This document shows, piece after piece, positions 3,172 to 59,784 of a DNA stretch of 64,000 nucleotides. Both the position numbers and the translations under genes were made by a program. The notes below the pieces were generated by a model. It was not told the origin of the DNA and ran no database searches. It saw only the letters and a program-made list of their open reading frames with translations. The DNA is from Macrostomum lignano (lineage: Eukaryota): positions 62,001-126,000 of the forward strand of contig NIVC01001036.1 of the NCBI GenBank assembly GCA_002269645.1, written 5' to 3'. How positions within the stretch are numbered: position 1 is the stretch's first letter; each line of letters begins with the position of its first letter.

Positions 3172-3935
3172 CACTGGGTGGAGTGAGGTGGCTGGCGGGG
3201 TGGCTGGCAGGGTGGCTGGCGGGGTGGCTGGCGGAGTGAGGTGGCTGGTGGAGTGAGGTGGCTGGTGGAGTGAGGTGGCTGGTGGAGTGAGGTGGCTGGT
3301 GGAGTGAGGTGGCTGGCGGAGTGAGGTGGCTGGCGGAGTGAGGTGGCTGGTGGAGTGAGGTGGCTGGCGAAGTGAGGTGGCTGGCGGGGTGGCTGGCGGA
3401 GTGAGGTGGCTGGCGGGGTGGCTGGCGGAGTGAGGTGGCTGGCGGAGTGAGGTGGCTGGTGGAGTGAGGTGGCTGGCGGAGTGAGGTGGGTGGCGGGGTG
3501 ACTGGTGGAGTGAGGTGGCTGGCGGGGTGGCTGGCAGGGTGGCTGGCGGGGTGGCTGGCGGAGTGAGGTGGCTGGTGGAGTGAGGTGGCTGGTGGAGTGA
3601 GGTGGCTGGTGGAGTGAGGTGGCTGGTGGAGTGAGGTGGCTGGTGGAGTGAGGTGGCTGGCGGAGTGAGGTGGCTGGTGGAGTGAGGTGGCTGGCGAAGT
3701 GAGGTGGCTGGCGGGGTGGCTGGCGGAGTGAGGTGGCTGGCGGGGTGGCTGGCGGAGTGAGGTGGCTGGCGGAGTGAGGTGGCTGGTGGAGTGAGGTGGC
3801 TGGCGGAGTGAGGTGGGTGGCGGGGTGACTGGTGGAGTGAGGTGGCTGGCGGAGTGAGGTGGCTTGCAGGGTGGCTGGCGGGGTGGCTGGCGGAGTGAGG
3901 TGGCTGGTGGAATGATGTGGCTGGCGGAGTGAAAT
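3172..3935. repeat. G-rich minisatellite, 17-bp unit (gagtgaggtggctggtg) with 12-bp variants
   Basis: Direct tandem repeat. It generates the three spurious H/P/S/T-rich minus-strand ORFs. Confidence 0.97.
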
Positions 3936-4742
3936 GGCTGATAGCAGCGATTCCAGTGGGTTGATAAAAGTAACTGCAACCGCATATTGCAACTTTTAGC
4001 AGAAGCAGAACAATGGATATGGCGGATGGATATAACAAAGGACTAGACAAATAAAAAATCATAAGTATGGCCAGAACTTTGCCTACATTTTTCGAGTACA
4101 AAGCCAGAAATTCATTGAAAAACGGTCGAAAACGAAGCGCAAAAGTGCTAAATCAAAGAGTTAGGCGGGATAAATCAAAGACAAACTGAAAATATCGTAT
4201 AAAAACGCTAGTTAAATATTGTTTATGAAAAATATGAAGTTATATAATACCGAAAGAAGTACACGAGGAACCTCTGGATCAGATATACAAAAGGAAAATC
4301 AATTAGCTATAAAGATAAGATATAGCAATTATAAATTTGGTGAGTGTCAGTTGAAGAAAGCTGAAAATCACACATTACAGATTAAAGCATAACAAACAGT
4401 TTTTCACGCGTTAGAAAAATTGATAAACCAAACACAGCTGTACTATAAGAGATCGAGCAGAAAATCAAAGGCTACATGGATGAAAATTATTATTGTCTAA
4501 ATAATCTCTAAGCTTTGTATTATAATAAACGAATAGGAGATTGGCAAACCGAACAAAATAAAAAAAGTGAATACCCACGGTAAATTTGCTATTGCTATTG
4601 CATAAGGGCCGCGAATTCGTTACAATATGCTGAAGAGTTGTCCTTAAAAAGGCCGTTTTTTTTAAATTTATGTCAAATTTATAGTTTTTTCCTCACAGCT
4701 AATTTTTGCTTTTTTACTTGCACTAATTGTATTACACCTGCT

Positions 4743-6254: not shown

Positions 6255-8795
6255 CTACTCCTGCTTCTGCTCCTGCTGTTGCTGCTGCTGCTGCTGCTGC
6301 TGCTGTTGCTGCTGCTGCGGCTGCGGCAGGGCCGCGGGCAGCGGAGAGCCAGCCAGCTCGAACAGCTGCTGCAGACCGACAGAGCGACCGCCAGTCACCA
6401 GCAGCACAATGTTGGCCGACTGCGGCCTGGCCAGCTGGCCCGGCCCCACGTGTCGGCCATAGACAGCGGCCAGAGCGGCGCCGCAGACCGGCTCAGTCAG
6501 CAGCTGGTGCTGGCAAAGGAAGCTGACGCTGGCCTTGGCCGCCTCATCCTGGCTGCAGGTCACCGAGTGCAACGGCTGCTCGCGGGCCGCGTCCAGCGCC
6601 CGCTGGCACGGCCGGCCGACTCCGCCGCCGCCGCCACCATCGAGGCAGCCGCCGTTGGTCGTTCGCAGCTCGGCGGCGATCACCGGCGTGGTGACCCAGC
6701 CGTAGCGCCACAGGCCGGACACGACGCCGGACAGTAGGCCGCCGCCGGACACAGGCAAAACGATAGCGTCGGGCTGTTCGCCGTTCAACGCCTCGGCGAG
6801 TTCGTCAACCAGGCCGCTGTAGCCCGTCCAGACGTCCTCGCTGTCGAACGGGTGCAGCAGGCAGACGGAGCGGCCCAGCTGGCCGGCCAGCAGCTCCGCT
6901 TGGCTGTGCGCCTCGGGCCAGTCGGCGCCGTGCAGCAACACCTGGGCGCCTTCGTCGGCGATGCGAGCGCGAGCCTCTTGGGCTACGGCGGCATCGTTGG
7001 CATTGGACGCGGCTGATTCGGGCAGCACGACAGTGCACTGCAGGCCGAGACGGGCAGCCGAGTAGGCGCAGGCCAAGCCGGAGTTGCCGGCGCAGCTGCT
7101 GCTGGTCACCACCTATTTATTTATTGATTGAAAGTAAGTTTAAAAAATACAGATAATGTCCTGACTAACTACTGAAGAAACGCATGTTGAGTAGCATTAA
7201 GATATCGTGTTTCCTAGAAATTCCTACAACTGTGACTAAAATTTGTTGCAATAGTTTACAGTTAAAGCGCCATTCAGCTGAAAAGATACATCTGATTTGC
7301 GAAATTTATAATTTTCTTTGCTTTTTATCCTTCACGTCTGAATTTTGGATACTATTGTATGTGTTGTGATAAGTTTTTGCACCCCGTTGCAGTCTGCTAT
7401 CTGGAACAAGCCATTTGCTTTTGACCATACAGGCAAAGCATTTTAAACCATCAGCCTGATTATAGTTCTGCCATATTGATGCAATAATGTTCTGCCGTCA
7501 TGATTTTTAAAGGTCAAAGCTTGCAGTCTGCCTGAGGATTAAGAGGTTGGGATTCCCTGAAAGTTAGGAGGTATTAAATGACTACCTGAAGGTTAGGAGG
7601 TGCTAAATGACTACCTGAAGGTTGGGGGGTGTTAAATGACTACCTGAAGGTTGGGAGTTGTTAAAGGACTACCTGAAGGTTGGGAGGTGTTAAAGGACTA
7701 CCTGAAGGTTGGGAGGTGTTAAAGGACTACCTGAAGGTTGAGAGGTGTTAAATGACTATCTGCAGGTTGGGAGGTGTTAAATGACTTCCTGAAGGTTGGG
7801 AGGTGTTAAAGGACTACCTGAAGGTTGGGAGGTGTTAAAGGACTACCTGAAGGTTGAGAGGTGTTAAATGACTATCTGCAGGTTGGGAGGTGTTAAATGA
7901 CTACCTGCAGGTTGGGAGGTGTTAAAGGACTACCTGAAGGTTGGGAGGTGTTAAATGACTACCTGAAGGTTGGGAGGTGTTAAAGGACTACCTGAAGGTT
8001 GGGAGGTGTTAAAGGACTACCTGAAGGTTGAGAGGTGTTAAATGACTATCTGCAGGTTGGGAGGTGTTAAATGACTTCCTGAAGGTTGGGAGGTGCTAAA
8101 TGACTACCTGAAGGTTGGGAGGTGTTAAATGACTACCTGAAGGTTGGGAGGTGTTAAATGACTACCTGAAGGTTGGGAGGTATTTAACGATTACCTGAGG
8201 ATTGAGAGTAAAATAGCGCCATAAACTCACGTGAGTGAAGCCCCGCTCAGCGGCCCGCCGCACGGCGTGAGCCATGCCGCGCAGGCACACGGACCCAGTT
8301 GGCTGGCAATTCTCCAGTTTGAGCCAAACGCGGCAGCCTTTGATGCCCATAGCTCTGGCCAGTGGCCGACTTTCAATCAGCGGAGTCCGCACGTGCAGCG
8401 GCAGCGGCGCCGGGACGCCAGCCGATGCGGCGGCCGCGGTGGCCAAGTCCGGGCACAGCAGGCCCAGCTGCGACAGAGCAGTCAGGGCGTCGTGCGGCGG
8501 CGAGTCCAAACTCGAGCCGTTGCTAGACAGCGAGACGTCAAGGTCGGAGGTGATCTCCTTGTGCCCGGCCAGTCTGTGCCCGCCATTGCCGCCGCCGCCG
8601 CTACCGCCGCCGCCACCACCGATGCCGTTGCTAGTGAGAGTGCGGAAAGCGTTCTGCGTGCCCAGAGCGTTGAACATGAGCAGGCTGTCAACCATTTCCT
8701 CTATGCCAGCCTGCGTGCCGCCGAAGCCGAAGCTGCCGCTGCCGCCGCCCCCAGTTGGACTGTCGGAGTCCAGCAGGCGGCTGAGACCACCGAAT
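6255..8795 (-). CDS. Serine dehydratase (SDS/SDSL-family, fold-type II PLP) domain with the catalytic Lys replaced by Cys. Exons 8795(or ATG 8695)-8231 and 7112-6255. Probably the 3' half of the RRM gene.
   Basis: The translation PLHVRTPLIES...VWLKLENCQPTGSVCLRG...AGNSGLACAYSAARLG...HPFDSEDVWTGY...LPVSGGGLLSGV...EPVCGAALAAVY...VTGG matches the SDS motif order. The phase-0 intron is CAC|GTGAGT (8230) ... ATAG|GTG (7113). There is a C-terminal polyQ. Confidence 0.92.
7562..8200. repeat. Minisatellite, 29-bp unit (gttaaatgactacctgaaggttgggaggt), ~22 copies, inside the SDS-domain intron
   Basis: Direct tandem repeat starting ~30 nt from the splice donor. Confidence 0.97.
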
Positions 8796-8934
8796 CTGCG
8801 GCGCGATTGGGTTTGAAGATTTGAGATGAGATGAGCGATCTGGATCTGTCAGCGGCGCTCTGGCCTGCTGTACTTTTGCACTGGGTTGGGGTGCCATAGA
8901 AATAAACTTAACGATTACGTATGCGCCTCTCAGC

Positions 8935-10150
8935 CTCGGTCTTTTTGTCTGTCTGTCTTAGTGTCTGCTTGTCTGTTTTTTAGTGTCTGTCCGTCTGTCT
9001 TAGTGTCTGCTTGTCTGTTTTTTTAGTGTCTGTCCGTCTGTCTTAGTGTCTGCTTGTCTGTTTTTTTAGTGTCTGTCCGTCTGTCTTAGTGTCTGCTTGT
9101 CTGTTTTTTTAGTGTCTGTCCGTCTGTCTTAGTGTCTGCTTGTCTGTTTTTTTAGTGTCTGTCCGTCTGTCTTAGTGTCTGCTTGTCTGTTTTTTTAGTG
9201 TCTGTCCGTCTGTCTTAGTGTCTGCTTGTCTGTTTTTTTAGTGTCTGTCCGTCTGTCTTAGTGTCTGTTTGTCTGTTTTTTAGTGTCTCTCCGTCTGTCT
9301 TAGTGTCTGCTTGTCTGTTTTTTAGTGTCTGTCCTTCTGTCTTAGTGTCTGCTTGTCAGTTTTTTTTAGTGTCTGCCCGTCTGTCTTAGTGTCTGCTTGT
9401 CTGTTTTTTTTGTGTCTGCCCGTCTGTCTTAGTGTCTGCTTGTCAGTTTTTTTTGTGTCTGCCCGTCTGTCTTAGTGTCTGCTTGTCTGTTTTTTTAGTG
9501 TCTGCCCGTCTGTCTTAGTGTCTGCTTGTCTGTTTTTTTAGTGTCTGCCCGTCTGTCTTAGTGTCTGCTTGTCTGTTTTTTAGTGTCTGTCCGTCTGTCT
9601 TAGTGTCTGTTTTAGTGTCTGATTAGTGCCTGTCTTAAAGTCTGTCTGTCTGGCAGTTTTAGTGTCTGTCTGTCTGCCTTAGTGTCTGTCTGTCTGCCTT
9701 AGTGTCTGTCTGTCTGCTTTAGTGTCTGTCTGTCTGCTTTAGTGTCTGTCTGTCTGCTTTAGTGTCTGTCTGTCTGCTTTAGTGTCTGTCTGTCTGCTTT
9801 AGTGTCTGTCTGTCTGATTTAGTGTCTGTCTGTCTGCTTTAGTGTCTGTCTGTCTGCTTTAGTGTCTGTCTGTCTGATTTAGTGTCTGTCTGTCTGCTTT
9901 AGTGTCTGTCTGTCTGCTTTAGTGTCTGTCTGTCTGCTTTAGTGTGTCTGTCTGCTTTAGTGTCTGTCTGTCTGTCTGATTTAGTGTCTGTCTGTCTGCT
10001 TTAGTGTCTGTCTGTCTGCTTTAGTGTCTGTCTGTCTGATTTAGTGTCTGTCTGTCTGCTTTAGTGTCTGTCTCTGTCTGCTTTAGTGTCTGTCTGTCTG
10101 ATTTAGTGTCTGTCTGTCTGCTTTAGTGTCTGTCTCTGTCTGTGTTAGTG
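8935..10150. repeat. Compound TGTC-based minisatellite: ~43-bp units (8935-9600) grading into ~21-bp units (9650-10150)
   Basis: Direct repeats tagtgtctgtccgtctgtcttagtgtctgcttgtctgtttttt and tagtgtctgtctgtctgcttt. Confidence 0.95.
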
Positions 10151-10912
10151 TCTGTCCTAGTGCCTGTTTTTAGCATTTGTCTGTCTTATTTGGCCTGTCT
10201 TCTGTCGTCTTAATTTCTGCCTGAATCTGGCTTAATGTTTCTTCAGTATATTCATATCTGTTTTTTATGTCTTACTAGTAGTGACTTAGTGACCGAATGT
10301 CTGCCTGTCTTAATATCGTGTCCATCCGTCTGTCCTCCTGTCCGTATTCATGCCAGTTTATTTTTACACATCTATATATAGATAGCTCGTATCCCAAAGA
10401 TCGAAGCAACCACGCTTTGCATTTTGGCCCGCTAGTCGGAAATGATCGGAAATCGATAACATCGATAATTTTACACAGGTAATCTCAAGCAGAAGTCTTT
10501 TTGCACAGCATTCCTCGCCTAAATTTCTGTTTAAGAAGCTGTCTCAACACTAAGCTCAGACTGTCCTACGTGTGTCGCCCCTAATATCAATGCTCGAGAC
10601 TTAAGGGCCTTAGGCTCGATTCTTAGCGTAGCATACCAGCTGTAAAGCAAGCCAATGCTAGAAATGTACAATTCCCCGACAACAAGCCAAGTTAAATTAA
10701 ACATCAGCCTGTCTGTAACATAAAGCGTATTTCACAAATATAAATTACAGAACCAGCTACACCAAGGTGAAGGTTTCCAAATTCGATGCTAATCTCTGCC
10801 GAATTTCCGTCGGCTAAAGCCGATCCTTTACCCACCTGTCTGGCCAAGCCGCAGTGCGGGTCAAGGGGCGAACAAACAAGTTGAACAACACGAAGCTATG
10901 AAGAGTTATTTT

Positions 10913-11164
<252 letters not shown>

Positions 11165-11569
11165 GACAGTAAGCTACGCCGCACAAGATCGCATTGCACA
11201 ATGCATAATAAAATTTGTAAAAGCAAAGATTTCGCTTCGTTATTATTAGTTGTAAAACTGAATTGCTGCTGCTGTAGCCTAAGAGAGAGTGGGAGAGAGG
11301 GGGGCAGGGGTAGGTGGCCATTGTCAGATAGGGAGCTTACACACTTGCAGGGTACTGCACCTGTGCACCTTAATTTCTGCGCTAGTGAGGGCAACTATAG
11401 AAGAGCCATGTTTCAATGTAGTAACACTGTTAAAAAGTGACCATTTTTATTACCTTTATCTCTGCCCACTTCATTCTTAATTCCTAGTCGATTTTTTATA
11501 CTCCTTTGAAGAAAACCGATGCGCTGTAAAATTCTTTGGCATTTTGACATATAGAGGCTTCGAGGGGCA

Positions 11570-12385
11570 CCAGGCCTCTCCCAGCTCTCTTAGATCAGAC
11601 ACCAGGCCTCTCCCAGCTCTCTTAGATCAGACACCAGGCCTCTCCCAGCTCTCTTAGATCAGACACCAGGCCTCTCCCAGCTCTCTTAGATCAGACACCA
11701 GGCCTCTCCCAGCTCTCTTAGATCAGACACCAGGCCTCTCCCAGCTCTCTTAGATCAGACACCAGGCCTCTCCCAGCTCTCTTAGATCAGACACCAGGCC
11801 TCTCCCAGCTCTCTTAGATCAGACACCAGGCCTCTCCCAGCTCTCTTAGATCAGACACCAGGCCTCTCCCAGCTCTCTTAGATCAGACACCAGGCCTCTC
11901 CCAGCTCTCTTAGATCAGACACCAGGCCTCCCCCAGCTCTCTTAGATCAGACACCAGGCCTCTCCCAGCTCTCTTAGATCGGACACCAGGCCTCTCCCAG
12001 CTCTGTTAGATCAGACACCAGTCCTCTCCCAGCTCTGTTAGATCAGACACCAGTCCTCTCCCAGCTCTCTTAGATCAGACACCAGTCCTCTCCCAGCTCT
12101 CTTAGATCAGACACCAGTCCTCTCCCAGCTCTCTTAGATCAGACACCAGTCCTCTCCCAGCTCTCTTAGATCAGACACCAGTCCTCTCCCAGCTCTGTTA
12201 GATCAGACACCAGTCCTCTCCCAGCTCTCTTAGATCAGACACCAGTCCTCTCCCAGCTCTCTTAGATCAGACACCAGTCCTCTCCCAGCTCTGTTAGATC
12301 AGGCACCAGTCCTCTCCCAGCTCTCTTAGATCAGACACCAGTCCTCTCCCAGCTCTCTTAGATCAGACACCAGTCCTTCCCAGCT
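11570..12385. repeat. Minisatellite, 32-bp unit (caccaggcctctcccagctctcttagatcaga), ~25 copies
   Basis: Direct tandem repeat adjacent to the donor of RRM exon 2. Confidence 0.97.
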
Positions 12386-12410
12386 CCCCAGCTCAAACAG
12401 CAGTGCTCAC

Positions 12411-15400
12411 CCGCCGGAGCCGAAGCCAGAGGAGCCGTTGAGGCCCGGGCTGGGGCCGCACAGGCTGGCGCTAAGCCGGCAGCCGGAGGCGCCCCCGGCC
12501 GCAGCGGCGCCCAGACCGGCCGAGTCGCGTTGCCGCCCGGTGTCCAGCGGCAGGTTGAACGAAGCGGACAGGCCAGCGTGGCGCGGGCCGGACCGGGCCC
12601 TGGCCGAGCCGTCCTCGGCGAATTTCACCAGCAGCGGGGCCGGCCACTCAGGTCCCTGGATTGGAGCAAAATGCAAACATGTATTATAAACAGTCAGTAC
12701 ACAGCTCCTCAGTACACAGACCCTCATACATGAACCCTCAGTACACAGCTCCTCAGTACACAGACCCTCATACATGAACCCTCAGTACACAGACCGTCAG
12801 TACACAAACCGTCAGTACACAGACCCTCAGTACACAGACCGTCAGTACACAGACCGTCAGTACATAGACCCTCAGTGCACAGACCCTCAGTACACAGACC
12901 CTCAGTGCACAGCCCCACAGTACACAGCCCCTCAGTACACAAACCTTCAGTACACAGACCCTCAGTGCACAGACCCTCAGTACACAGACCCTCATTACAC
13001 AGACCCTCAGTACACAGACCCTCAGTACACAGACCCTCAGTACATAGACCCTCAGTGCACAGACCCTCAGTACACAGACCCTCATTACACAGACCCTCAG
13101 TACACAGACCGTCAGTACACAGACCCTCAGTACATAGACCCTCAGTGCACAGACCCTCAGTACACAGACCCTCAGTACACAGACCATCAGTACACAGACC
13201 CTCAGTACACAGACCTTCAGTACACAGACCCTCAGTACACAGACCCTCAGTGCACAGACCCTCAGTACACAGACCCTCAGTACACAGACCCTCAGTACAC
13301 AGACCCTCAGTACACAGACCCTCAGTGCACAGACCCTCAGTACACAGACCCTCAGTGCACAGACCCTCAGTACACAGACCCTCAGTGCACAGACCCTCAG
13401 TGCACAGACCCTCATACATGAACCCTGTCTTATCTAATTCTACGAAAAACGTTTGCCAAATCAGTTAGGAAGTGACCTACAAAAGTGTTTTGATAGTCCT
13501 TCAACTATATTAGAATTCAACTTCGAATTGCCCGATCAAGGCCGGCTAGCGGCATGAAGTATTGCATTAGCAAGGCGGGGAATTTTCATTTTAAGCACCA
13601 AAATTGGCTATTACATCTTGTTTTTTGGACTTTTAAAAAGCATTTTGATCGGAAGTAATTACACAATTGAATATTGATCGAAAGATTTTCTAAGGTCAGC
13701 ATCCGATAGCTACGAACTTTATATATAGAAATAGACAATTAATTAAAGTACAGAGAAAACTTTTGAATCGAAGAATTTTCTATTCGAAGATAGGACAAGC
13801 TAGATAGCCTAGCTAAGTCTGCAGTAATATTATATAGAGTTTGTGAGTGCCCACAATTTTCCCACACTTTCATCACATGCTGTTACGAGTATTGCGCTGC
13901 AGTGAGATAAAAAATTGCAATTGTGAATGTCGTCAGTCAAAGCTTAGTATGCAGTACTTGTGCTCGAAGAGCGCACCCCCTGTCGCTGTCGCTATTCTCA
14001 GCACCCCAAGATGAACAATAGAATGTAATATAATGTACAAATAAGAAGCAAGCATATTATTACATCACGTAGGCAAAATTATACAGTAGAATATAATGAC
14101 GGAACTTTACAGATGATTTAATAACACTGGTTAATAGGAAGGCGAAACGCTTACACTAGTGGGGCTACACTACACCAGCTGATCAGCGTCCAGGCCAGCA
14201 AACAGGAGGGGGGAGGAGACAATTTCAAGCAATAATGACAGCCCCAGTAAAGTACAATGAGTCAGCCTTCTCTCTCTCTCGCACACACAGACACACTGAG
14301 AAGACAAGCTGAGTACAGTCGCATTAGTAAGAGGCGGCTATGGTGGGAAGTCTCACAATGGGTCTGCGCACTGATGAGTGGAACCGGCCTCCCCCCGTAT
14401 TTCTCCCGTAGGCATATAATAAAATAGCTAAGAGCTCCAACTGAGAGCAGAGAGCGAGCAAGACAGGGGAGCTCAGGGGGGGGGGGGGTGAGCAGAGAAC
14501 CGCGCTCTGAGCCCAGGTGAGAGGCTCATTTCAGGCATTAAAAAAAACCATCGAACCAAACACACACAGAGTTGGTGGGGTAGACTAGGCTTTGGCTACA
14601 AAAAACTGCGGTGGTCCGCGACCTACAGTAGGCTATTAATAGTGAAAATGTACGCTGAGATGACGCAAAGCAGCTGAGGTGATGAAGAGTACAGGGAGAC
14701 ACTCAATTTTTCTAAGAGCAGAACTTTGTTCTATTTATCACACATTATAAAATCTGACTCACATTTTTTGGGCCAGCATTCGCGTTTTTTCTTGCTTTAA
14801 TTAAACAGCAGTTATCAATCATATAATTCACATTTAAGGTGTTCAGATCTATGAGTTAGCAGGTACAGCCGGTTATAAGGCGAGATGGTCAGATAATACA
14901 TTGTAAAGCTTATGTGGATAATATGCGGATATAGATAGGTACTTTAATCTTTAAACCCTATATTCTTTTTAACGACCACAATTTATCAAGGCAATGCAGT
15001 AACAGCCCGAGATTCGATTGCAAGCCAGCAAACAACGGAAATGGCATGGCAATGGCGTATAGTTAAAGACATTATGGGCGACTAGCTAAAATTTAATGTT
15101 AGTGTAAGAGAATCTCTAGTCTGTTTATAAGCAGAAATTCAGGCAAGCAAACCACTATTGATATGAGGTGTGCAGCAAGCCTACCCTCTCAGATGTTCAG
15201 GTGTGCAGCATGCCTACCCTCTCAGATGTTCAGGTGTGCAGCAAGCCTATCCTCTCAGATGTTCAGGTGTGCAGCAAGCCTACCCTCTCAGATGTTCAGG
15301 TGTGCAGCAAGCCTACCCTCTCAGATGTTCAGGTGTGCAGCAAGCCTACCCTCTCAGATGTTCAGGTGTGCAGCAAGCCTACCCTCTCAGATGTTCAGGT

Positions 15401-17125
15401 GTGCAGCAAGCCTACCCTCTCAGATGTTCAGGTGTGCAGCAAGCCTACCCTCTCAGATGTTCAGGTGTGCAGCAAGCCTACCCTCTCAGATGTTCAGGTG
15501 TGCAGCAAGCCTACCCTCTCAGATGTTCAGGTGTGCAGCAAGCCTACCCTCTCAGATGTTCAGGTGTGCAGCAAGCCTACCCTCTCAGATGTTCAGGTGT
15601 GCAGCATGCCTATCCACTCAGGTGTTCAGGTGTGCAGCATGCCTATCCACTCAGGTGTTCAGGTGTGCAGCATGCCTATCCACTCAGGTGTTCAGATGAG
15701 ACACAGCTACCCTCTCAGATCTTCAGGTGAGACACAGCTACCCTCTCAGATCTTCAGGTGAGACACAGCTACCATCTCAGATGTTCAGGTGAGACACAGC
15801 TACCATCTCAGATGTTCAGGTGGGACACAGCTACCCTCTCAGATGTTCAGGTGAGACACAGCTACCCTCTCAGATGTTCAGGTGAGACACAGCTACCATC
15901 TCAGATGTTCAGGTGAGACACAGCTACCATCTCAGATGTTCAGGTGGGACACAGCTACCATCTCAGATGTTCAGGTGAGACACAGCTACCATCTCAGATG
16001 TTCAGGTGGGACACAGCTACCATCTCAGATGTTCAGGTGGGACACAGCTACCCTCTCAGATCTTCAGGTGAGACACAGCTACCATCTCAGATGTTCAGGT
16101 GAGACACAGCTACCCTCTCAGATGTTCAGGTGGGACACAGCTACCCTCTCAGATGTTCAGGTGAGACACAGCTACCATCTCAGATGTTCAGGTGGGACAC
16201 AGCTACCATCTCAGATGTTCAGGTGTGCAGCATGCCTACCCTCTCAGATGTTCAGGTGAGACACAGCTACCATCTCAGATGTTCAGGTGAGACACAGCTA
16301 CCCCCTCAGATGTTCAGGTGAGACACAGCTACCCTCTCAGATGTTCAGGTGAGACACAGCTACCATCTCAGATGTTCAGGCGGGTCCAACGTTACTCTCT
16401 TGGCACTCTAATCTCACCTGCAGCCCATTGGTGTTCATGATAGCCCGCTCAGCGTTGCTCTTATCGTCGAAGGTGACGAAGCCGACGCCCTTGGACAGAC
16501 CCGTGTTGGGGTCCGTCAGCACCCGGATCTGCACCAGCTTGCCAAACCGAGAGAACAGCGCGTTCAAATCGGCCTCAGTCCAGGTGCGCGGAATTCCTGA
16601 CACGTACAAATTGCCCGGATTGCGCAACGGTAGGGCACCACCGCCGCTGCCGCCACCGCCTCCGCCACTACCTCCGCCGCCGCCTCCGCTGTGCCGCTCA
16701 GCCCGCGGCATCTGCGGCAGAGGCAGCGGCGAGCCGTCGGGGCCAACGAAGCCGGCGCAGGAGCTGCTGCCGGTGGCGGCGTAGGCAACTCGCAGCTTCT
16801 TGTTGCCAAGCCGCATGCCGTGGAACTCGCCGATGGCCTTCTCGGCGTGCTCCGGGAACAGGAAGTCTACGAAGCCGTAGCAGAGCGAGGCGCCAGTCTG
16901 CTTGTCGCGCACCACTTTGTGAGTACGAATTGGGCCGACCTTTTCGAATAGGGCGCGCAGATCCTCAGTGTCGAATGTCTGTGGCAGATAATTGATGATT
17001 AGGTTAGTGCGGCTGCGGTCCTCGTGGGACTGCTGCTGCTGCTGATGCTCCTGCTGTGGCTGGCCAGCGCCTCTGCCCAGCTGGGCCTCCAGCATGCCAC
17101 TTGGCGCCGATTCCTGCTGCAACAT
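12411..17125 (-). CDS. Sxl/ELAV(Hu)-family RNA-binding protein with two RRMs. Exons 17125-16418 and 12655-12411 (or stop at 12407).
   Basis: RRM1 reads RTNLIINYLPQ...RDKQTGASLCYGFVDF...KKLRVAYA. RRM2 reads NLYVSGIPRT...GLSKGVGFVTF...AERAIMNTNGLQ and is completed by exon 2, GPEWPAPLLVKFAED. The phase-0 intron is CAG|GTGAGA ... TCCAG|GGA. The start could be ATG 17125 or ATG 17095. Confidence 0.92.
12694..13420. repeat. Minisatellite, 15-bp unit (cagtacacagaccct), ~48 copies
   Basis: Direct tandem repeat ~40 nt from the exon-2 acceptor. It is the source of the 5-aa periodic ORFs. Confidence 0.97.
15160..16380. repeat. Two-zone minisatellite: 33-bp unit (gatgttcaggtgtgcagcaagcctaccctctca), then 31-bp unit (gatgttcaggtgagacacagctaccctctca)
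   Basis: Direct tandem repeat in RRM intron 1, ending 37 nt from the donor. Confidence 0.97.
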
Positions 17126-21847: not shown

Positions 21848-24800
21848 TTAATCATCAAGCTTCAAAGCTTTCTGTCTGGCCTGCTTCAGTCGCAGGCGTT
21901 CAAACCGGGCATTAGTGTGGGATTTGAACAGCGGATTAGCTTTCAGCCAGGATTCGTAAGCGGAGCGGAACAGCTGATATTCTTTGGGATCGACGGGGCG
22001 GCCACCGCAGGCCGAGCTGACCTCGGCGACGGCCAAGGAGGACGCAGAGGAGGCCGCTGCTGCGGGCAGGCGGTCGCGGCACCTGGCCACTTCGGCCTCC
22101 AACAGGCGGACAACAGCCGGACTAGGCGGCACATCAAAGCCGGTCATCCGCCTCACCAGCCAGATTCTATAGGCCAAATCGTAGGGCTGGGCGGCGCTTA
22201 GCATAGCGTGAAACACGGCCTGGTCAGGCTGGGCCGCGTCGCGCGCCATGTCCGCCAGGAGGCGCTCGGCGGCCTCCTTGGAGCGGCAGGCGCCGCCCAG
22301 AGCCACGTAGGTGTCCCGGTCCGGCCGCAGGCCATTCGACCGCATCTCGTCCAAAGTGTCCGAGCAGTCCAGCCGGTTCCGAACCCGATAGCGGAGCAGG
22401 GCATTGTACAGGTTGGCCCCGCCGCCGGGAGTCGATGCCCGGTGGAAGCCGCGGCTCCGGCAGAGCCGCATCAGCGTCCGCTCAGCTTCCGGTATTGGCG
22501 GAAGCATCTCCATCAGTTCGAAAGCGATCGCCGGAGTTGGCTCGGCGCCGTCGGCTCGCATTGACTCGAGTAGGCCAGCTAAGCCGCCAATTAGAGTAAG
22601 GCGTTGCCATGGCAACCTGAGCGCATCAGGCGAGTCTGGCAGGCTCGGCAGCGGCTGACGCGGCCGGAGGAGGCTGAGCGGGCAGCTCAAAGCCAGAGCG
22701 GCTGGTGGCTGAGCCGGCAGTGAGAAGTCCAGCTCTGACTGCGGCAGTTCAGCAGCCGACTCAGCTACCGGCTGCCTCATCACTGTCAGATTCTGGGCGT
22801 CCAGCTCAGCCGACCAGCCGTCCTGCAGTCGCTGCATCGCGGCGCCAGCGCCGGAGCCTTTGACGTCACCAGATTGGCCGTCGCCGAGTCGATTGGAGCC
22901 GGACCGCATGAAAGCCCGGGCTGGCGGCCCGGCCGCCGCTTCCGCCGCTGCCATGAGGCTCGGCTGACCGATGCCGCAGGCTCGAAGGCACCTGAGATGG
23001 GGATTTGGTAGAGTTGCATCTGTGTTGCATCGTCTACTAAAATAGCCCAGCGGTCTAGCGCAGGCTCTGGTGTGCTAGCGGCCTAGGCTCGATTCCAAGT
23101 GCAGTCGCATTAATTTGGGGCTAAATTGGAATTTCTGCTTGGCTCTGCTCGTGCAATTAACGGCCGTGAGGGGCTAACCCCTAAGACACAGTGAAGTGTA
23201 CATGCCTAACGATAAATAAAGTTAGGGCCGCTGTACACTCCTGTGTGAGTGTGTGCCTGTGCGTGTGACTGCGTACGTATCCGCGCGCTTGTGTGCCTGC
23301 TCAGGGGAGTCGGCGGAATGGGCAGCAATGCCTCTCGCCGGTTGTGTGACAATGTCGCTTAAAGTGCGCCAGGGTTGCACACAGCCTCTGTGACTTATAA
23401 AAAGAGAACAATAGATTTCTGCGACAGTTATTGGAAGACCTTTCCAGTTAGAAGTTAGACCAACCTGAGCAGCCGATGATAGTGATGGGCCGACAAGCGA
23501 CCACCGAATGCCAGACGGAATCGGCGCCAAACAAGCAGTGCGATGGCGCTGCCGGATGTTTTGTCGGCGAAGGCCGCCTGCAGCAGCGCGTTTAGCATTG
23601 TAGGCAGCGGGTGCTGCTGTCCAACGGATACGGAATCGTCGAATATCTGCAGTAGTTGTTGCACAGTTAGTTTCAGTGAGATTTAAATAGAAATTTGCAA
23701 ACATCACTTAGAAGCAATGTTTTTCTATTGTGGCCACTAATAATAAGACTTGGGAGAGGAGCGGCATCTACTGAGGGAGAAGGGTAAGGGGAAGGGCCAC
23801 CGTAGCAACAGCGGCACCCACAGCAGGACAGTGAGGGAGCAGCGGCAACCAATGCTGCAGGACACTGAGGGAGCAGCGGCAACCAAAACTGCAGGACACC
23901 GAGGAAGAGGAAGCAGCGGTAACCAATGCTGCAGGACACTGGGGGAGCAGAGGCAACCACTGCAGGACACTGAGGGAGCAGAGGCAACCACTGCAGGACA
24001 CTGAGGGAGCAGAGGCAACCACTGCAGGACACTGAGGGAGCAGCGGCAACCAATGCTGCAGGACACTGAGGGAGCAGCGGCAACCAATGCTGCAGGAAAC
24101 TGAGGGAGCAACGGCAACCAATGCTGCAGGACACTGAGGGAGCAGCGGCAACCAATGCTGCAGGAAACTGAGGGAGCAACGGCAACCAATGCTGCAGGAC
24201 ACTGAGGGAGCAGCGGCAACCAATGCTGCAGGACACTGAGGGAGAAGAGGCATCCCATAAAAACAATGAAGTAAGACAAACCTTAAGCGCCTCCTGCACT
24301 AGTCCATTCTTGGCGCAGGCTAGCACAGCAAAATAGTACACGTATCTGTGCTGCTCCCCTCCGCCCCCAGCCTGCTTGGAGTCTTCGCAGAGCGCGTGAT
24401 AATAGCGACAGGCCAGCTCGCCCGCCACCCGGTCCGGAGTGCCGTCATAGTAAGAGGCCTTAGCCAGAGAGTGCAGATAGTGACAATGGGTCGCATAGTT
24501 GGGCTCCACACCGGCTGAGCGACACCTGAATTGAATTATGATTCCATAATAAATCTTTATTAGTCTGGATTAAACTCTCAAAGTCTCTAAACATTTGCTC
24601 GATTCAATCTCGATTGTAACAGCCATTCAGTCAGTTCAGTCACCTAGGCTAAGAAGCATCCCAGAATATCAATGGCATCGCCGCAGGTAACACGTACAGG
24701 TAAAATAGGAAAGAGGTGATTCCAGACGACTCTAAAATGATGAGATGTCACGGTAAAAGTCGCCAGAAAGTCGTTAAAGAGTCACCTAAGAGTCACTTTG

Positions 24801-25876
24801 AAGCGTTTTATTGTCAGAGATTCTGAAAATGACTCTTGGACGGTGGAGTGGTATCTGAGGCGTTAGAGTCGCTGAATTACATATAGAGTCCTGGTGTTGC
24901 GTCACTTTATGAATTAGAATCGAATATCGCATTTAAAACAACTTTATTTAGTCTACTTGAGTTAGTAGAAAGTTAAGCGCTGACCGCTAACACAGACTTT
25001 TTTATGATTCTGCAACTCACGTGATGCACTAGTGACTCAACAGTCGCCTCTCCGTCGCATTCATTAAAGTCGTTTATCATAGATAGTTGTTACTCCTAAA
25101 ATAAACTAACTCCTAAAATAAACTCTAAAAAGGACCTTTAAAGCTTATTTAAGTACTGAAATTGTTTTTAATTGCTAGTGAAAAAATATTTAAATTTAAA
25201 ACTAGCGGGTAAAAAGCGCGAGTATATCAAAAATTGCCTCGGCAGCTAATTAGTTATCAAAAACCTTTATTTTTACGAATCATAATCAGGCATCGCACCT
25301 ATTCATCACCGCCTTAACCTCGTCGTAGGCGCCAACCGAGGCCAGGTGTCGCATTGTCTGATTCATTATTCGCCTAGTGGGCAGGAATCGATCCTCGCCG
25401 ATCATGTCTCGATGCAGCAGGCGCACAATGCCGGCCGTGTCGCCGGCCTCCGCTAGCTTGTCTAGCCGTCGCAGATACCAGCCTTCGTCGTGCTTCCTGC
25501 CGACTCGCGCTAGAGGCCGATGATCGGGTAGCCGGTCCTCGTCAATAATAACTGTATCGTCTGGCGCCGATTCCGACATAGCGTCGGCGGCCTCTTCTAG
25601 GCCGAGCTCGATGTCGATCCGGGCGGATTCGGGCGGCTCTACTAGGCTGCTGGTGCGGGCCAGGGCGCCGAATTCGAAGCCAGATTTGTCCGTCCGCATC
25701 GGCTGCTGTTGCTGTTCAACCCGACGCCGATTGGCTTTGTTCCGATTGGCCAGCTGTCCAAATCGAAACGCGCTGCTGGAGTCCTCCATGGTGGCCACGG
25801 AGCTGCTGCCAAGCCGGCGACTGGCCGCAGCCACTGTCCTGGTGGCAGATGATAGGCACAGGCGACAGAGCAGCAT
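21848..25876 (-). CDS. PTCD1: Mitochondrial pentatricopeptide-repeat protein, PTCD1-like, 715 aa. Exons 25876-25299, 24525-24282, 23646-23465, 22991-21848.
   Basis: The N-terminus is Arg/Ser/Ala-rich, like a presequence (MLLCRLCLSSATRTVAAASRRL). The helical repeats resemble PTCD1 as I recall it (WYLRRLDKLAEAG..RDMIGEDRFLP; DKTSGSAIALLVWR; RCLRACGIG; YNALLRYRVR; PDRDTYVALGGAC). All four exons join in frame via GT-AG introns (578+244+182+1144 = 2148 nt). Confidence 0.85.
23043..23403 (+). mobile_element. tRNA-derived SINE, family B, copy 2 (antisense in PTCD1 intron 3)
   Basis: Colinear with the copies at 20350 and 60052. A box tagcccagcggtc and B box ggctcgattcc. Confidence 0.85.
23800..24245. 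repeat. Minisatellite, 31-34-bp unit (ggacactgagggagcagcggcaaccaatgctgca), in PTCD1 intron 2
   Basis: Direct tandem repeat. Confidence 0.93.
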
Positions 25877-27310: not shown

Positions 27311-30306
27311 AAAGCCCTATTACGAGTGCGAGGCTCATGCAGTACCGAATATTATACAGGGCAGTGTATTACATTGTTAACGTAAACGAGAACGCAAAGG
27401 CAAAATACAAAGCAATGAATGGTTTGAGAGGGGTATGGGCATGGCTAGTGCTCACGCAGTTTCTCTCTGCAATTTTTAGGCAACCATCAACCACCACTGC
27501 ACCCCAAAGCATTTGCTGCGAGTCTTCTGTCTCCTGTGTTCGCAGGCTCGCTGACTTGGACCTCAAACCTCAGCTTCGGCATTGAGGTTGGCTAGTTTAA
27601 AGATAGTCTGTTTGCATAGTGTTCATATCACAAAGTATCTATTGAAATATTATTCCAATCTAATCACTTATACAAATACTTGATATCTATTATAACTAAA
27701 AATAATATACAACTTAAATTTTTTAAAAGAAATTAGACAATTATAAAAGTATACTACTAGGTCTAAGATAGATTGAAACCCTTAAGTGATTTCATTATGG
27801 ATTACTAGCAATCTAGTGCCCCCTTCAGGGCGCCCAATAAGCAAGGAGCAAAAATTATTCATGTAAATTCATTAGAAAAGCATATTTTCATAAATTAAAA
27901 TTTTGATTTAATTAAAATTTGACTTTTGGAAGTGTGTAAAAGAGTGGCGAAAAATAAACTAATTTTTGCTATATATACATGCATTTTGTTCTGTATAAGC
28001 AGTATATCAAGAGTAAAAAGTGAGTTTTGGTCATACAAAACTTTGTTTTTCTGAATTTTGATTTTAGAAAATTTCAATTACCATTTTGGAAAGTTAGCAA
28101 ATTTTAATTTTGACAGAAAATGATTTCTAATAATCCTAAAGCGCATTAAAATAACTTGACTCTTTTTCTAAAGCACGCATCCACAAGTTTTCAACATTTA
28201 TTCCAATAGGGACACCAAGTCATTTAGATTAAATGTCACAAAACAGTTATGACATAACTAATTTCAAAGGCAAGTCAATATTAGTTTCAATTAACATTGG
28301 CAATATGGTTACATAATGTAAATCAAGTTTAATGCTACATTCTTCTACACTATATTTTCAACACTATAATGCAATTCCAATTGATGTTAAAATTTTTAGC
28401 TAGTACACAAACAATAAATAAAAAGCCTTGTATAATGCAATCTTTATCAGAACCAGAATTCAGTCAGTTTTTTTAACATTTTTATAAGTATTTCAAATTG
28501 AAAAGTCCATTTGACCTTTGAAAAAAACATGTTTTTTTATATTTAATCACTTTAGCATTGAGAAATTACTTAGCCAAGACATATGTACCATTAGGGGAAA
28601 TTTATACATAAATTTGAAAAAGTTTCTTAAAGTTTGAAGAAAATTGGTTTAATCATTTTTCTCTAATTAAAATTAGATAGCAAGTCAATTTGCCAAAAGT
28701 TGATCTGCCAAAAGTCAATTTACTAAATGTAGGTTGTTTTGCCAAAAGTTTTTTGTTAAACAAATAAACAACAAACAACAACAAAATCAATCTTGTATAA
28801 GCCTACAATTATTTGTTTTTTTAACTGCTATTGAACAATCTGGACATCTTATGTATAGCTAATAAATCTTTAATAATTGTTCATGAGTTTAAAGTGGCAA
28901 GGGAAAGGCAGAAAAAGGTAGGGGTAAAGGCGCTACTACCTACTACTTACTGTCATATAATGTAGAAAATAAAAAAATGTCTATTGATACAAATTGTCTA
29001 AATTGCCATATACTATATAGCCTATAAATGGCAAGTTGTTAGGCAAAAAATATTTTCTTTATATTTTACAATTAAAAAATTGTACTAGCAAAGAGAAATA
29101 TTCTGTAATTAATAATGAATTAAAATAATTTTAGGCAATGACAGCCAACAAATCAAATTTATGATATTTAACATGTTATCAATCAAGTTTTAGCAAATTG
29201 ACTTAAGTTTTGGCAAAAATATATTTGGCAAATCATCTTTTGGCAAAAAAAGTTTTTTTGCAAATTATCTAGTATTCATAAATCATATAAAATAGATTTT
29301 TATCTACCAACAAGACATTTTTTAGTATATGGATTATATTAGACATTATATAAAAAAAAGAATTTAATCAAACTTAAACTAAGCCATAAACAATAAGCAA
29401 CTATCAGCAAACTATTTTGATATAATTATAGTACTCCTAGTTCTAGTCCTATTCTGTGCATATTTTAAACCAAAACCACTAGCCCTAAATTAATACAATT
29501 TTATATTTAGTAGGTCCCTACTGTTATGCATGAAAAGAAGTTGACTTTGCTTGTTAATTTTCCTTTCTAAAATCGAAATTGATAGCTTTATTGTTAAATT
29601 CCCAAGTGTCTCACTTAATATTATATTACATTACAATACATATATTATAATATTACATATTATATTATATTCTAAAGATAATACTTGATGTTATTGTTAG
29701 CCTCTCTCTTGTAATAGTACAATTAATTGAATGCCAGTTAAATAATAGTAGTTTATCTGTTTAGCTAAGTAGTCTAGCCTAGTTAGTATTAACAGTTTAT
29801 CATTAACTTAATTTACAATAAGTAAGGAATAGAAACTGGTGCGTTTTCAACAACCACCGCATACATTAATTTTCAATTTTCATTAAATGAAGTTTCACGA
29901 GTCGATAATTTTTCAAAATTTAAACTTTCTGTGGAGTTAGAAGATTTATATTCATTAAAACAAAGTGAATGTTGGTTAAGGGGACGCCGTATGCTGTTCT
30001 TTACTTAGTAAATTTAAAAGTTAGGCTTCTGTGTATAGTTTTTGCACCGATTGATGTAGAACTGAAAATATTAAGACGATGGGACAGGGACCCAGGGACG
30101 AAGGGCAACACTTTTGCATTTGGTTAAGACCAAACCCAAGGACTATTCAAGTAGTAGCAGTTGAGTAGTCTTTGGTATTACTGTACAGAACTTGGGCACC
30201 ATGCCATAAGCAGTCCAATCTACCGAAGTGCCGCTTACCGAAAGCATGGGCACTGAAATGAAATGCCTGGCAAGTGTCAACCCTCTCAGTGGAACTATAA
30301 TAACAA

Positions 30307-30987
<681 letters not shown>

Positions 30988-31134
30988 GTGAAATATAGGC
31001 TCATTTTCATGAAGAAAGATACATCTACGTTTCAATACGTTTAAATTCATCCGCAAAATATGTAGGCACAACAAAGATCTCAACAAATGTCGATGATATA
31101 TGTTTTCTGTCTCAACATGATGCCCATGCCAACA

Positions 31135-32129: not shown

Positions 32130-33017
32130 CTAGGTCACCAGAATGGCAATGTAGTCCGCGTGCTGAATTGTTGAACTCATTGACTGTGTCGGATCGGTGC
32201 TGTAGACAATTGTCGGGATGGGATTAGTCGATCTGTACATGGCGCACACATCGATCTGATTGTCTAAGACAGCCATAAAATTGCGGTCGTTGCTGCAGCC
32301 ATTATAATCAATATTGATAAAAAATCTTCGTTCATTTGTCTTATCCGTGGCTCCTTCAATAGAAAAGTAGTTCGTGTTCATTGACGACAGGCTGGTCATA
32401 GGCCAGCTCTGCACAAGGCGCTCCTTGCTGAACCAATTCAGGCTGGTGACACCTGGAGCATTTGTGCCAACATCGAACACGAGTCTCACAACAACGGCGG
32501 AGTTCTTGTACAGCTGCACGATGAACTGCTTGAAAGTCAGTCCAGAGATCAGACGCTGCACATCATCGAGCAGACCGGAGCGGAAGGTGTCCAGCATGGC
32601 GGCCGCGTCAGGGTGCATTGGCTGCACCGCGTAGTCAGGTCGAGATGGTGGGTCGGTCAGCACCTCCCATACCTTTTGACCGCAGCCGCTCTTCACGCTC
32701 ATGACGACGTGCTCAAGAGCCGTCAGTCCGACTGGCATGAACACGGTGCAGTCAGTTGTACACAGCTCGTAGCGGGGGCACACAGCGGCTGTCACGTGAC
32801 ACGCGTCTTCACTTGACGACGTCATAACTGCAGCGGACTCAGCGGCCGACATTGAGGCGTAGAAGCTGCAGGTTCGCTCACTGGCAGCAACGATGATCGA
32901 GCCCGGATCAGCGCACACCGGCTTAAAGGAGTACCTCAGGTATTGCAGGCTGCGGGCAGCTTTGGCCGCCGCAATAAGCAGTAGAATATGAAGAGAGAAA
33001 TTTTGCTGTAGCAGCAT
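32130..33017 (-). CDS. Intronless secreted protein, 295 aa: signal peptide, Cys-rich PAN/apple-like region and an uncharacterised C-terminal domain
   Basis: Non-repetitive 888-nt ORF with a hydrophobic N-terminus (MLLQQNFSLHILLLIAAAKA) and a Cys cluster at residues 35-112. The C-terminus reads NWFSKERL..NYFSIEG..RRFFINIDYNGCSND. Confidence 0.85.
   Translation of the reverse strand: MLLQQNFSLHILLLIAAAKAARSLQYLRYSFKPVCADPGSIIVAASERTCSFYASMSAAESAAVMTSSSEDACHVTAAVCPRYELCTTDCTVFMPVGLTALEHVVMSVKSGCGQKVWEVLTDPPSRPDYAVQPMHPDAAAMLDTFRSGLLDDVQRLISGLTFKQFIVQLYKNSAVVVRLVFDVGTNAPGVTSLNWFSKERLVQSWPMTSLSSMNTNYFSIEGATDKTNERRFFINIDYNGCSNDRNFMAVLDNQIDVCAMYRSTNPIPTIVYSTDPTQSMSSTIQHADYIAILVT

Positions 33018-35589: not shown

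Positions 35590-36965
<1,376 letters not shown>

Positions 36966-42952: not shown

Positions 42953-59784
<16,832 letters not shown>

Follow-up and report, generated by a model that had tools for sequence, protein, structure and literature searches.

A probable pseudoenzyme domain of serine dehydratase type in an ELAV-like RNA-binding protein of the flatworm Macrostomum lignano

A stretch of 64,000 nucleotides of the Macrostomum lignano genome (assembly GCA_002269645.1, contig NIVC01001036.1, positions 62,001 to 126,000; hereafter the window, whose first letter is position 1) was analysed with respect to one minus-strand gene, BOX15_Mlig010810g1 (protein PAA73106.1), which spans approximately 17107..6255 in four exons and ends in a domain related to serine dehydratase (SDS). 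In this domain the lysine that binds pyridoxal phosphate (PLP) is replaced by cysteine. The interpretation that we consider probable is that of a selected pseudoenzyme domain within a flatworm chimera of ELAV and SDS, folded, devoid of the lysine, retained across trematodes and cestodes and serving a non-catalytic function, for which a dimerisation module is the likeliest candidate. The features by which a pseudoenzyme is operationally recognised are present together, namely a fold that is predicted to be kept, a missing catalytic lysine and purifying selection. The original prediction, made from the letters of the window, had likewise suggested a probable pseudoenzyme, and this is upheld by the match to the PALP profile, the Cys at the Lys position, the partial loss of cofactor and K+ ligands, the SDS-like fold, the low ratio of nonsynonymous to synonymous substitution (dN/dS) and the existence of cestode orthologues that also have no Lys; the loss of catalysis itself is what we infer from these observations.

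The degenerate lysine motif and its structural setting

The codons GGG TCC GTG TGC CTG CGC GGC were read on the minus strand at 8276..8296 as originally claimed and encode GSVCLRG, a degenerate version of the canonical PLP-lysine motif GSFK[IL]RG (sequence context CCA ACT GGG TCC GTG TGC CTG CGC GGC ATG, PTGSVCLRGM). The TGC codon (8285..8287, minus strand) corresponds to Cys482 of the 785-residue model derived from the window and to Cys137 of a 440-residue open reading frame (ORF). The alignment with SDS and SDSL that had been proposed as a check was carried out with HMMER and places this Cys opposite the Lys of GSFKIRG in human SDSL (2rkb), human SDS (4h27) and rat SDS (1pwe), in agreement with MAFFT, leaving the fused domain without the Schiff-base Lys41 of the SDS motif S-F-K-[IL]-R-G. 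Catalysis by the PLP-dependent fold-type II enzymes requires the equivalent lysine, with which PLP forms the internal aldimine. Among 153 sequences of the SDS family, the Lys column holds Lys in 140, is gapped in three truncated fragments and holds another residue in ten, all of which are flatworm proteins fused to RNA recognition motifs (RRMs). The conversion of AAR to TGC takes three nucleotide changes, which indicates an old change rather than a recent lesion. Restoration of the Lys by RNA editing was considered and ruled out, as neither A-to-I nor C-to-U editing can turn TGC into AAR.

The ring-stacking Phe40 and Ala222 were included among the scored site residues in line with the SDS structure papers. 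Together with the PLP and K+ residues of the rat SDS structure as summarised in PMC555945 they make up the 19 positions scored; in that structure Lys41 binds PLP, the segments SAGNA and GGGGL and residue Cys303 form hydrogen bonds with PLP, and the K+ ligands are Gly168, Glu194, Ala198, Ser200, Leu223 and Val225 (PMC555945). Of these positions, 10 are intact in the M. lignano fused domain, whose alterations are F40V, K41C, A68S, G168S, A198G, S200C (a Cys at this position being common in invertebrates), the deletion of Ala222 and Leu223, and C303T, and the features retained include Asn67, Glu194, Leu172 and three of the four loop glycines. Cys303, which by alignment is the Cys of VCGG and not that of EPxCGAAL, is missing as C303T, and the K+ site is altered by G168S, A198G and the deletion of Leu223 along with Ala222, with Glu194 kept. 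Within the reading frame, and always on the minus strand, the Asn loop reads SSSCAGNSG (7077..7103; canonical SS-GGNAG or SAGNA), having gained two residues and A68S and kept Asn67. A lineage-specific insertion of about nine residues, ASNANDAAVAQ (6978..7010), occurs in no other family member and was modelled with a predicted local distance difference test (pLDDT) score of ~83-85. The phosphate-binding Gly loop, VSGGGLL (6732..6752), contains G168S and so reads SGGGL against GGGGL (168-172), the first Gly being replaced and the rest kept. The Gly-rich replacement TTNGGCLDGGGGGGVG (6615..6662) stands for the segment that carries Ala222 and the K+ ligand Leu223 in SDS and that is 13-18 residues longer in canonical enzymes, and LLVTGGR (6384..6404) has Thr at Cys303, a PLP hydrogen-bonding residue of SDS (PMC555945).

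Several of these lesions had been named in the original prediction, and the change from VGGGG to VSGGG (6752..6732), the shortened Gly-rich stretch after VIAAE (6662..6615) and the retention of AGN and EPxCGAALAA (here EPVCGAALAA) were all recovered by alignment; F40V, A68S, C303T and the two-residue and nine-residue insertions extend its list. Altogether, the fused domain departs from canonical enzymes at 21 of the 80 columns in which these never vary. Given the loss of Lys41, Phe40, part of the K+ site and Cys303, the domain almost certainly performs no PLP-dependent beta-elimination and, as judged from its sequence, would be catalytically dead.

The lesions are set in a domain that matches Pfam PALP (PF00291) over the full-length profile with E = 1e-52, and the nearest solved proteins by sequence, as assessed by HMMER, are human SDSL (2rkb, 3e-45), human SDS (4h27 and 1p5j) and rat SDS (1pwe). 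A structural model, also suggested earlier as a check, was computed using AlphaFold2 from a 60-sequence alignment, yielding a 321-residue model with a pLDDT of 90.8 and a predicted template modelling (pTM) score of 0.90, in which the only part of low confidence is the Gly-rich replacement (pLDDT <50 at residues 225-230 of 321). The best structural matches of this model in Foldseek were human and rat SDS and SDSL, with TM scores of 0.82-0.85. The M. lignano domain is predicted, on the basis of this model, still to fold as an SDS-like two-lobed PALP domain.

An ELAV-like host protein encoded by four exons

The original prediction had treated the domain as a free-standing enzyme gene. Exon mapping, matches to HuR and HuD and the Pfam assignment contradict this and identify it as the C-terminal domain of an ELAV-like protein with two RRMs. 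An exhaustive protein search with the domain identified PAA73106.1 (779 residues), which is 100% identical over the whole SDS-like domain (residues 436-756). A word-indexed protein search with the same query gave a best identity of 44%, returning mostly bacterial enzymes at ~40% and one M. lignano paralogue; it missed both the protein encoded in the window and the flatworm orthologues, and the exhaustive search was needed to recover them. The contig NIVC01001036.1 and the window were identical over the 13.5 kb compared. Alignment of PAA73106.1 to the window using tblastn gave 100% identity over coding exons 17107..16418, 12655..12411, 8795..8231 and 7112..6255 (minus strand), all junctions of which are GT-AG; these four exons are the sole combination that gives a single open frame, and the resulting window model has 785 residues. 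The GenBank gene models of GCA_002269645.1 are genome-guided RNA-seq assemblies with boundaries taken from trans-splicing and poly(A) evidence (PMC5730564), so that the fused RRM-PALP model rests on transcripts.

The supported part of coding exon 1 (16418..17107, minus strand; donor CAG/GTGAGA), encodes RRM1 (17011..16778, RTNLIINYLPQ...KKLRVAYA) and most of RRM2, which starts with NLYVSGIP at 16612; both are of ELAV/Hu type according to the HuR/HuD match and Pfam RRM_1. A candidate acceptor or spliced-leader (SL) trans-splice site, ttgcag/CAGGAA, is located just 5' of this exon at ~17120, so that the 5' end given here is provisional. Coding exon 2 (12411..12655, minus strand; acceptor ccag/GGACC, donor GCGG/GTGAGC, the junction splitting a Gly codon) completes RRM2 (GPEWPAPLLVKFAE) and continues into a low-complexity linker, and differs from the gene copy on NIVC01000487.1 at two sites, both synonymous. 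Coding exon 3 (8231..8795, minus strand; acceptor cgcag/ATTCGG, donor CAC/GTGAGT) codes for a linker rich in Gly and Ser and for ~57 residues at the start of the PALP domain (LHVRTPLIES...GFTH). It is separated by intron 3 (7113..8230, minus strand; GTGAGT...AATAG, 1118 nt, consisting mainly of 22 copies of a 29-bp minisatellite at 7556..8198) from coding exon 4 (6255..7112, minus strand), which encodes the remaining PALP domain and ends in a poly-Gln tail (~6323..6258) followed by the TAG stop codon (6257..6255). The codons flagged originally at 8231-8330 are real, but the region is the last 100 nt of an internal minus-strand exon; likewise, the frame described as an intact ORF is open, but it consists of two exons (8795..8231 and 7112..6255) of a larger gene, with the ATG at 8695 internal to it. 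The latter ATG was tried as the start codon of a 440-residue model and was ruled out, since PAA73106.1 maps to two more upstream exons. The poly-Gln tract encoded in the genome (PQPQ followed by Q16, 6258-6323) is longer than that of PAA73106.1 (785 versus 779 residues) at a locus of identical DNA; the deposited coding sequence (CDS) may skip part of the CAG repeat, and the repeat of NIVC01000487.1 is 18 nt shorter.

In the N-terminal half of the protein, residues 33-116 and 164-244 match RRM1 and RRM2 of HuR (4ed5, 5e-43), HuD (1fxl, 7e-42) and Sxl. Both RRMs align end to end and keep their RNP-2 and RNP-1 motifs (NLIINYLPQ and LCYGFVDF in the first, NLYVSGIP and KGVGFVTF in the second). A Pfam scan of the full protein reported two RRM_1 stretches and PALP and found no third RRM, the C-terminal half being the SDS-like domain; where ordinary ELAV proteins have a hinge and RRM3, this one has a low-complexity linker and an SDS-derived domain. 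This setting alters the meaning of the 'scaffold or sensor' originally proposed. The function retained by the PALP domain would be a non-catalytic one exerted within an RNA-binding protein.

Distribution in flatworms and selection on the domain

The flatworm sample consisted of trematodes, cestodes and M. lignano, with planarians, polyclads and monogeneans outside it. A profile search detected the PF00076+PF00291 architecture in more than 20 flatworm species, comprising trematodes (Schistosoma spp., Trichobilharzia, Heterobilharzia, Paragonimus, Opisthorchis, Clonorchis, Echinostoma, Fasciolopsis and Dicrocoelium, with partial records for Fasciola and Calicophoron) and cestodes (Mesocestoides, Spirometra, Schistocephalus, Echinococcus, Taenia, Hydatigera and Hymenolepis, with a partial record for Rodentolepis). 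The S. mansoni orthologue A0A3Q0KMS9 (970 residues) is encoded by an uninterrupted ORF on ~3.85-kb contigs that were assembled independently from 175 sequencing runs, and we take these contigs as evidence, from transcripts, that one mRNA carries the fusion. No RRM was found in other long SDS-like proteins among the best 150 representatives of the exhaustive search. The M. lignano protein is 64-67% identical to flatworm RRM+PALP proteins in RRM1 and 39-46% identical in the PALP domain; a motif after RRM2, P[ED]W..PL, is conserved among these proteins, and the signatures GASLCYGFVDF and RLRVAYA are common only to the flatworm fusion proteins. A single origin of the fusion is supported, at the level of sequence comparison, by the shared architecture and by the similarity of RRM1 with its family signatures. 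In a neighbour-joining tree of the PALP domains alone, a flatworm clade was recovered at 90%.

At the Lys column, most trematodes keep GSFKIRG, Trichobilharzia szidati has E, M. lignano has C together with F40V, and the seven cestodes sampled are all without Lys (V, L, L, A, A, T, T) and all carry F40V. In the orthologues, whose inspection at the Lys codon had been named as a check, the Lys is thus missing from the cestodes and T. szidati and kept in most trematodes, and the Cys is not shared. The number of altered canonical-invariant columns in the fused proteins, those that keep the Lys included, is 13-42 of 80, which suggests relaxed catalytic constraint across the fused family. Macrostomorpha branch outside Neodermata, and the simplest history is therefore an ancestral Lys with independent losses in Macrostomum, on the cestode stem and in T. 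szidati. The lysine has been lost in at least three flatworm lineages without loss of the domain. Within Trichobilharzia, T. szidati shows K41E, GNAG->GSLA and GGGG->GDGG, and T. regenti keeps the Lys and has F40Y and GNAG->GSSA, the site eroding differently within one genus in a domain that is otherwise conserved. A further SDS-like protein with intact Lys, UPI00060488A0 (660 aa), has a 290-residue N-terminal extension that aligns loosely with RRM2 and the linker of the fusion family; Pfam detects no domain and no RRM in this extension, and the protein may be a family member whose RRMs have degenerated, from a flatworm lineage outside the sample.

M. lignano also possesses a canonical SDS of 324 residues (A0A1I8H4H1; PAA55083.1 and copies), in which GSFKIRG is present, 15 of the 19 site residues are kept, as in canonical invertebrate SDS in the alignment, and 80 of the 80 canonical-invariant columns are unchanged. 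No RRM exon was found in the 9.4 kb upstream of the stand-alone locus, and this enzyme presumably covers serine dehydratase chemistry in the animal. Another M. lignano entry, A0A1I8GLH6 (629 aa), consists of two near-complete copies of the stand-alone SDS head to tail and is probably not a genuine two-domain protein but a merged model of tandem or duplicated copies. In the nemertean Tubulanus polymorphus, XP_074641592.1 carries a PALP domain with Lys that is preceded by two PDZ domains, and in another SDS-like protein PALP is followed by a class I/II aminotransferase domain; judging by these partners, SDS-type domains seem to be reused more widely in multidomain proteins.

Three copies of the gene are present in the M. 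lignano assembly (in the window, on NIVC01000487.1 and on NIVC01001348.1), in keeping with its redundancy (PMC5730564), and in all of them the PALP frame is open and the codon is TGC. The window differs from NIVC01000487.1 by 10 synonymous and 3 nonsynonymous changes, corresponding to a Nei-Gojobori omega of 0.11 (P = 2e-4 versus neutrality), and for the PALP part alone 6 synonymous and 3 nonsynonymous differences (omega 0.18, P = 0.015); the CDS is 99.4% identical between copies and the noncoding flanks ~95%. Among the cestodes, which lack the Lys, only RRM1 is better conserved than the PALP domain, with identities between Echinococcus and Spirometra of 54% for PALP, 39% for RRM2 and 26% for the linker, and between Echinococcus and Taenia of 91% for PALP, 79% for the linker and 61% for the C-terminal tail. 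The domain is not decaying but kept by purifying selection, and this agrees with the original prediction, which had suggested such selection from the open frame and the retained motifs. At ~2990 of NIVC01001348.1 (equivalent to ~8752 of the window, codon 327 of the 785-residue model), 1 nt is deleted from a GGGGG run in the linker of exon 3. The deletion breaks the frame shared with the RRM exons and so probably explains why this copy is annotated as a 429-residue PALP-only protein; it may be a real frameshift or a long-read homopolymer or assembly error.

The window is dense in long, highly regular mini- and microsatellite arrays, located at 20-1051, 1147-1541, 3177-3940, 7556-8198, 8946-10157, 10914-11162, 11568-12386, 12694-13418, 15166-16000, 30300-30990 and 54200-55600, with periods that include 50, 22, 17/327, 29, 43, 2, 32, 15 and 33 bp in addition to long tetranucleotide-type arrays, and several regular arrays fill introns of the RRM-PALP gene. 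These repeats fit the 15% of tandem repeats reported for the M. lignano genome (PMC5730564). Further long, coding-like ORFs are found on the minus strand at 21848-22954, 25286-25876, 32130-33017, 35979-36470 and 45361-46356, of which the fourth has a C terminus like a reverse-transcriptase-associated zinc-binding domain and the last resembles a fibronectin-III-type membrane protein.

Possible roles, rival explanations and known systems

Enzymes of the SDS family are homodimers, and RRM3 of ELAV/Hu proteins mediates multimerisation; for these reasons dimerisation is considered the likeliest role of the PALP domain. A dimerising PALP domain could act as a like-for-like replacement of RRM3 and would bring together an assembly of four RRMs. 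Alternatively, the domain might be a regulatory module that binds a small molecule, either non-covalently held PLP or an amino acid, and thereby shapes the action of the RRMs on U/AU-rich mRNAs. In the Lys-less cestodes the pocket positions are invariant at 9 of 19, compared with a domain average of 79 of 312, and the glycine loops of the pocket may be retained there for structural reasons. A more far-reaching proposal, which we regard as rather unlikely, is that the fusion proteins are ancient, phylum-wide ELAV-type mRNA regulators whose RRM3 was replaced by an SDS-derived module, such that serine, threonine, PLP or a PLP-amino-acid adduct gates RNA binding via dimerisation or a conformational change. 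If this were true, amino-acid or vitamin-B6 status would be coupled directly to mRNA stability or translation, and the family would represent a eukaryotic, RNA-level counterpart of bacterial MocR/GabR in which catalysis is dispensable and has been lost repeatedly (Macrostomum, cestodes, T. szidati).

Several points weigh against a selected, non-catalytic domain with a dimerising role. Both the deadness of the domain and its role as dimerisation module or sensor are inferred. Asn67, GGGL and Glu194 remain in the pocket, which makes non-covalent PLP binding or residual chemistry conceivable. The neighbour-joining tree groups the M. lignano fused domain with the neodermatan fusions at 37% and with the M. 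lignano stand-alone SDS at 46%, and does not place it; a single ancient fusion accordingly rests on architecture and RRM similarity. The dN/dS estimate is built on just 13 substitutions, and the annotation of PAA69090.1 (NIVC01001348.1) as a 429-residue PALP-only protein starting at an internal ATG allows for a short isoform without RRMs.

This last point leads to the rival explanation that survives best, although it too is unlikely: a stand-alone PALP pseudoenzyme of ~440 residues would be made also, or mainly, from the ATG at 8695, perhaps via SL trans-splicing at the exon 3 acceptor, and the fusion would be one isoform. PAA69090.1 begins at the corresponding ATG and bears no partial flag, the context of ATG 8695 is good (A at -3, G at +4), 38.8% of M. 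lignano genes are trans-spliced (PMC5730564) and the schistosome annotations include several isoforms, one of them RRM-only. However, the frame is open for the 100 nt upstream of the ATG, as far as the acceptor at 8795, fusions are annotated for two of the three copies, the copy with the short model is the one that carries the frame-breaking 1-nt deletion (NIVC01001348.1), and the fusion is conserved across the flatworm phylum.

Very unlikely is the explanation that the new function lies in the Cys itself, whose redox- or aldehyde-reactive thiol would sense PLP or the oxidative state. It is true that the Cys lies at the N terminus of the helix that normally presents the Lys to the cofactor, according to the alignment and the model, and that it is found in all three M. 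lignano copies; however, these copies are too similar for testing the conservation of the Cys, and V, L, A, T or E, variable and non-nucleophilic, occupy the position in the independent Lys-less lineages, a variation that indicates released constraint rather than new chemistry. The sensor acting via the Cys that the original prediction had envisaged is not borne out for the same reason, as the Cys is not conserved in the other Lys-less orthologues.

Lower still we rate the explanation that the domain remains an enzyme, an active serine/threonine dehydratase tethered to RNA that holds PLP non-covalently, via a Cys hemithioacetal or through another residue. The retention of Asn67, Leu172, Glu194 and three of the four loop glycines, the pocket invariance in the Lys-less cestodes given above and the Lys of most trematode orthologues would accord with it. 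Against it stand the need for the Lys in the internal aldimine and in catalysis, the further lesions (F40V, G168S, C303T and the deleted Ala222/Leu223 segment), the 21 of 80 changed canonical-invariant columns, and the fact that the replacing residue differs by lineage (C/V/L/A/T/E), which leaves no conserved substitute for the catalytic Lys. An explanation by pseudogene decay, or by an error of sequence or assembly, with a frame that is open by coincidence, for which the highly redundant and repeat-rich genome (PMC5730564) and the 1-nt deletion in the linker G run of NIVC01001348.1 might be cited, is extremely improbable in view of the TGC and open PALP frame common to the three copies, the excess of synonymous differences (omega 0.11), the three base changes needed for K->C, the transcript-derived gene model (PMC5730564) and the persistence of Lys-less orthologues in all sampled cestodes.

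On the preferred interpretation of a selected pseudoenzyme domain, the name under which the protein is currently filed in UniProt and GenBank, L-serine ammonia-lyase, should not be applied, since the domain lacks the defining catalytic features of SDS. The labels found for flatworm RRM+PALP proteins are 'L-serine ammonia-lyase', 'Serine dehydratase-like' and 'ELAV-like protein 2 variant 2', the first of which assigns the wrong metabolic activity to Macrostomum and to all sampled tapeworms; for genome annotation this is a case in which domain-based metabolic reconstruction would mislead. Pseudoenzymes and enzyme-derived regulatory domains are already known as classes, and literature searches found no publication on an ELAV-serine dehydratase chimera or on a pseudoenzyme of SDS type or of the PLP-dependent fold type II. 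The sequences of the fusion proteins are public but mislabelled, and their biology is undescribed. The family offers a natural series on what becomes of a PLP-enzyme fold once its chemistry is dispensable: flukes keep the Lys, and tapeworms, one bird schistosome and Macrostomum each lost it independently. The fusion proteins further suggest a post-transcriptional regulator specific to flatworms, for which M. lignano is a tractable free-living model with RNA interference and transgenesis.

Among known systems, the nearest analogies in function would be the bacterial MocR/GabR regulators, which join an aminotransferase domain of fold type I to a winged-helix DNA-binding domain, act as ligand sensors and normally keep the PLP lysine, and IRP1/aconitase, an enzyme-derived RNA regulator. 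The likeness of the flatworm protein to these would be one of logic only, a metabolic-enzyme fold that is joined to a nucleic-acid-binding regulator or doubles as one; with MocR it shares no homology beyond a broad PLP-enzyme ancestry. With SDS and SDSL (EC 4.3.1.17, fold-type II, PF00291) the M. lignano domain shares the two-lobed PALP fold, the Asn of the SAGNA loop, GGGL, Glu194 and EPxCGAAL, but it is without Lys41 (Cys), Phe40 (Val), Gly168 (Ser), Cys303 (Thr) and the Ala222/Leu223 segment, has two lineage-specific insertions and forms the C terminus of an RRM protein rather than a free-standing enzyme of ~320 residues. With the ELAV/Hu proteins (HuR/ELAVL1, HuD and Drosophila Sxl/ELAV) the protein has in common the tandem RRM1-RRM2 arrangement and the RNP-2/RNP-1 motifs, whereas the hinge and RRM3 give way to the linker and the SDS-like domain. 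Its closest counterparts are the flatworm RRM+PALP proteins, such as S. mansoni A0A3Q0KMS9, E. granulosus W6UE85 and M. corti A0A0R3U5Y8, which have the same architecture and, in the cestodes, the same absence of the Lys together with F40V. RRM2 is well preserved in M. lignano, whereas Pfam detects one RRM in S. mansoni and in Echinococcus, and the features unique to M. lignano are the 13-18-residue deletion with poly-Gly, the two insertions, the poly-Gln tail and the Cys in place of the Lys.

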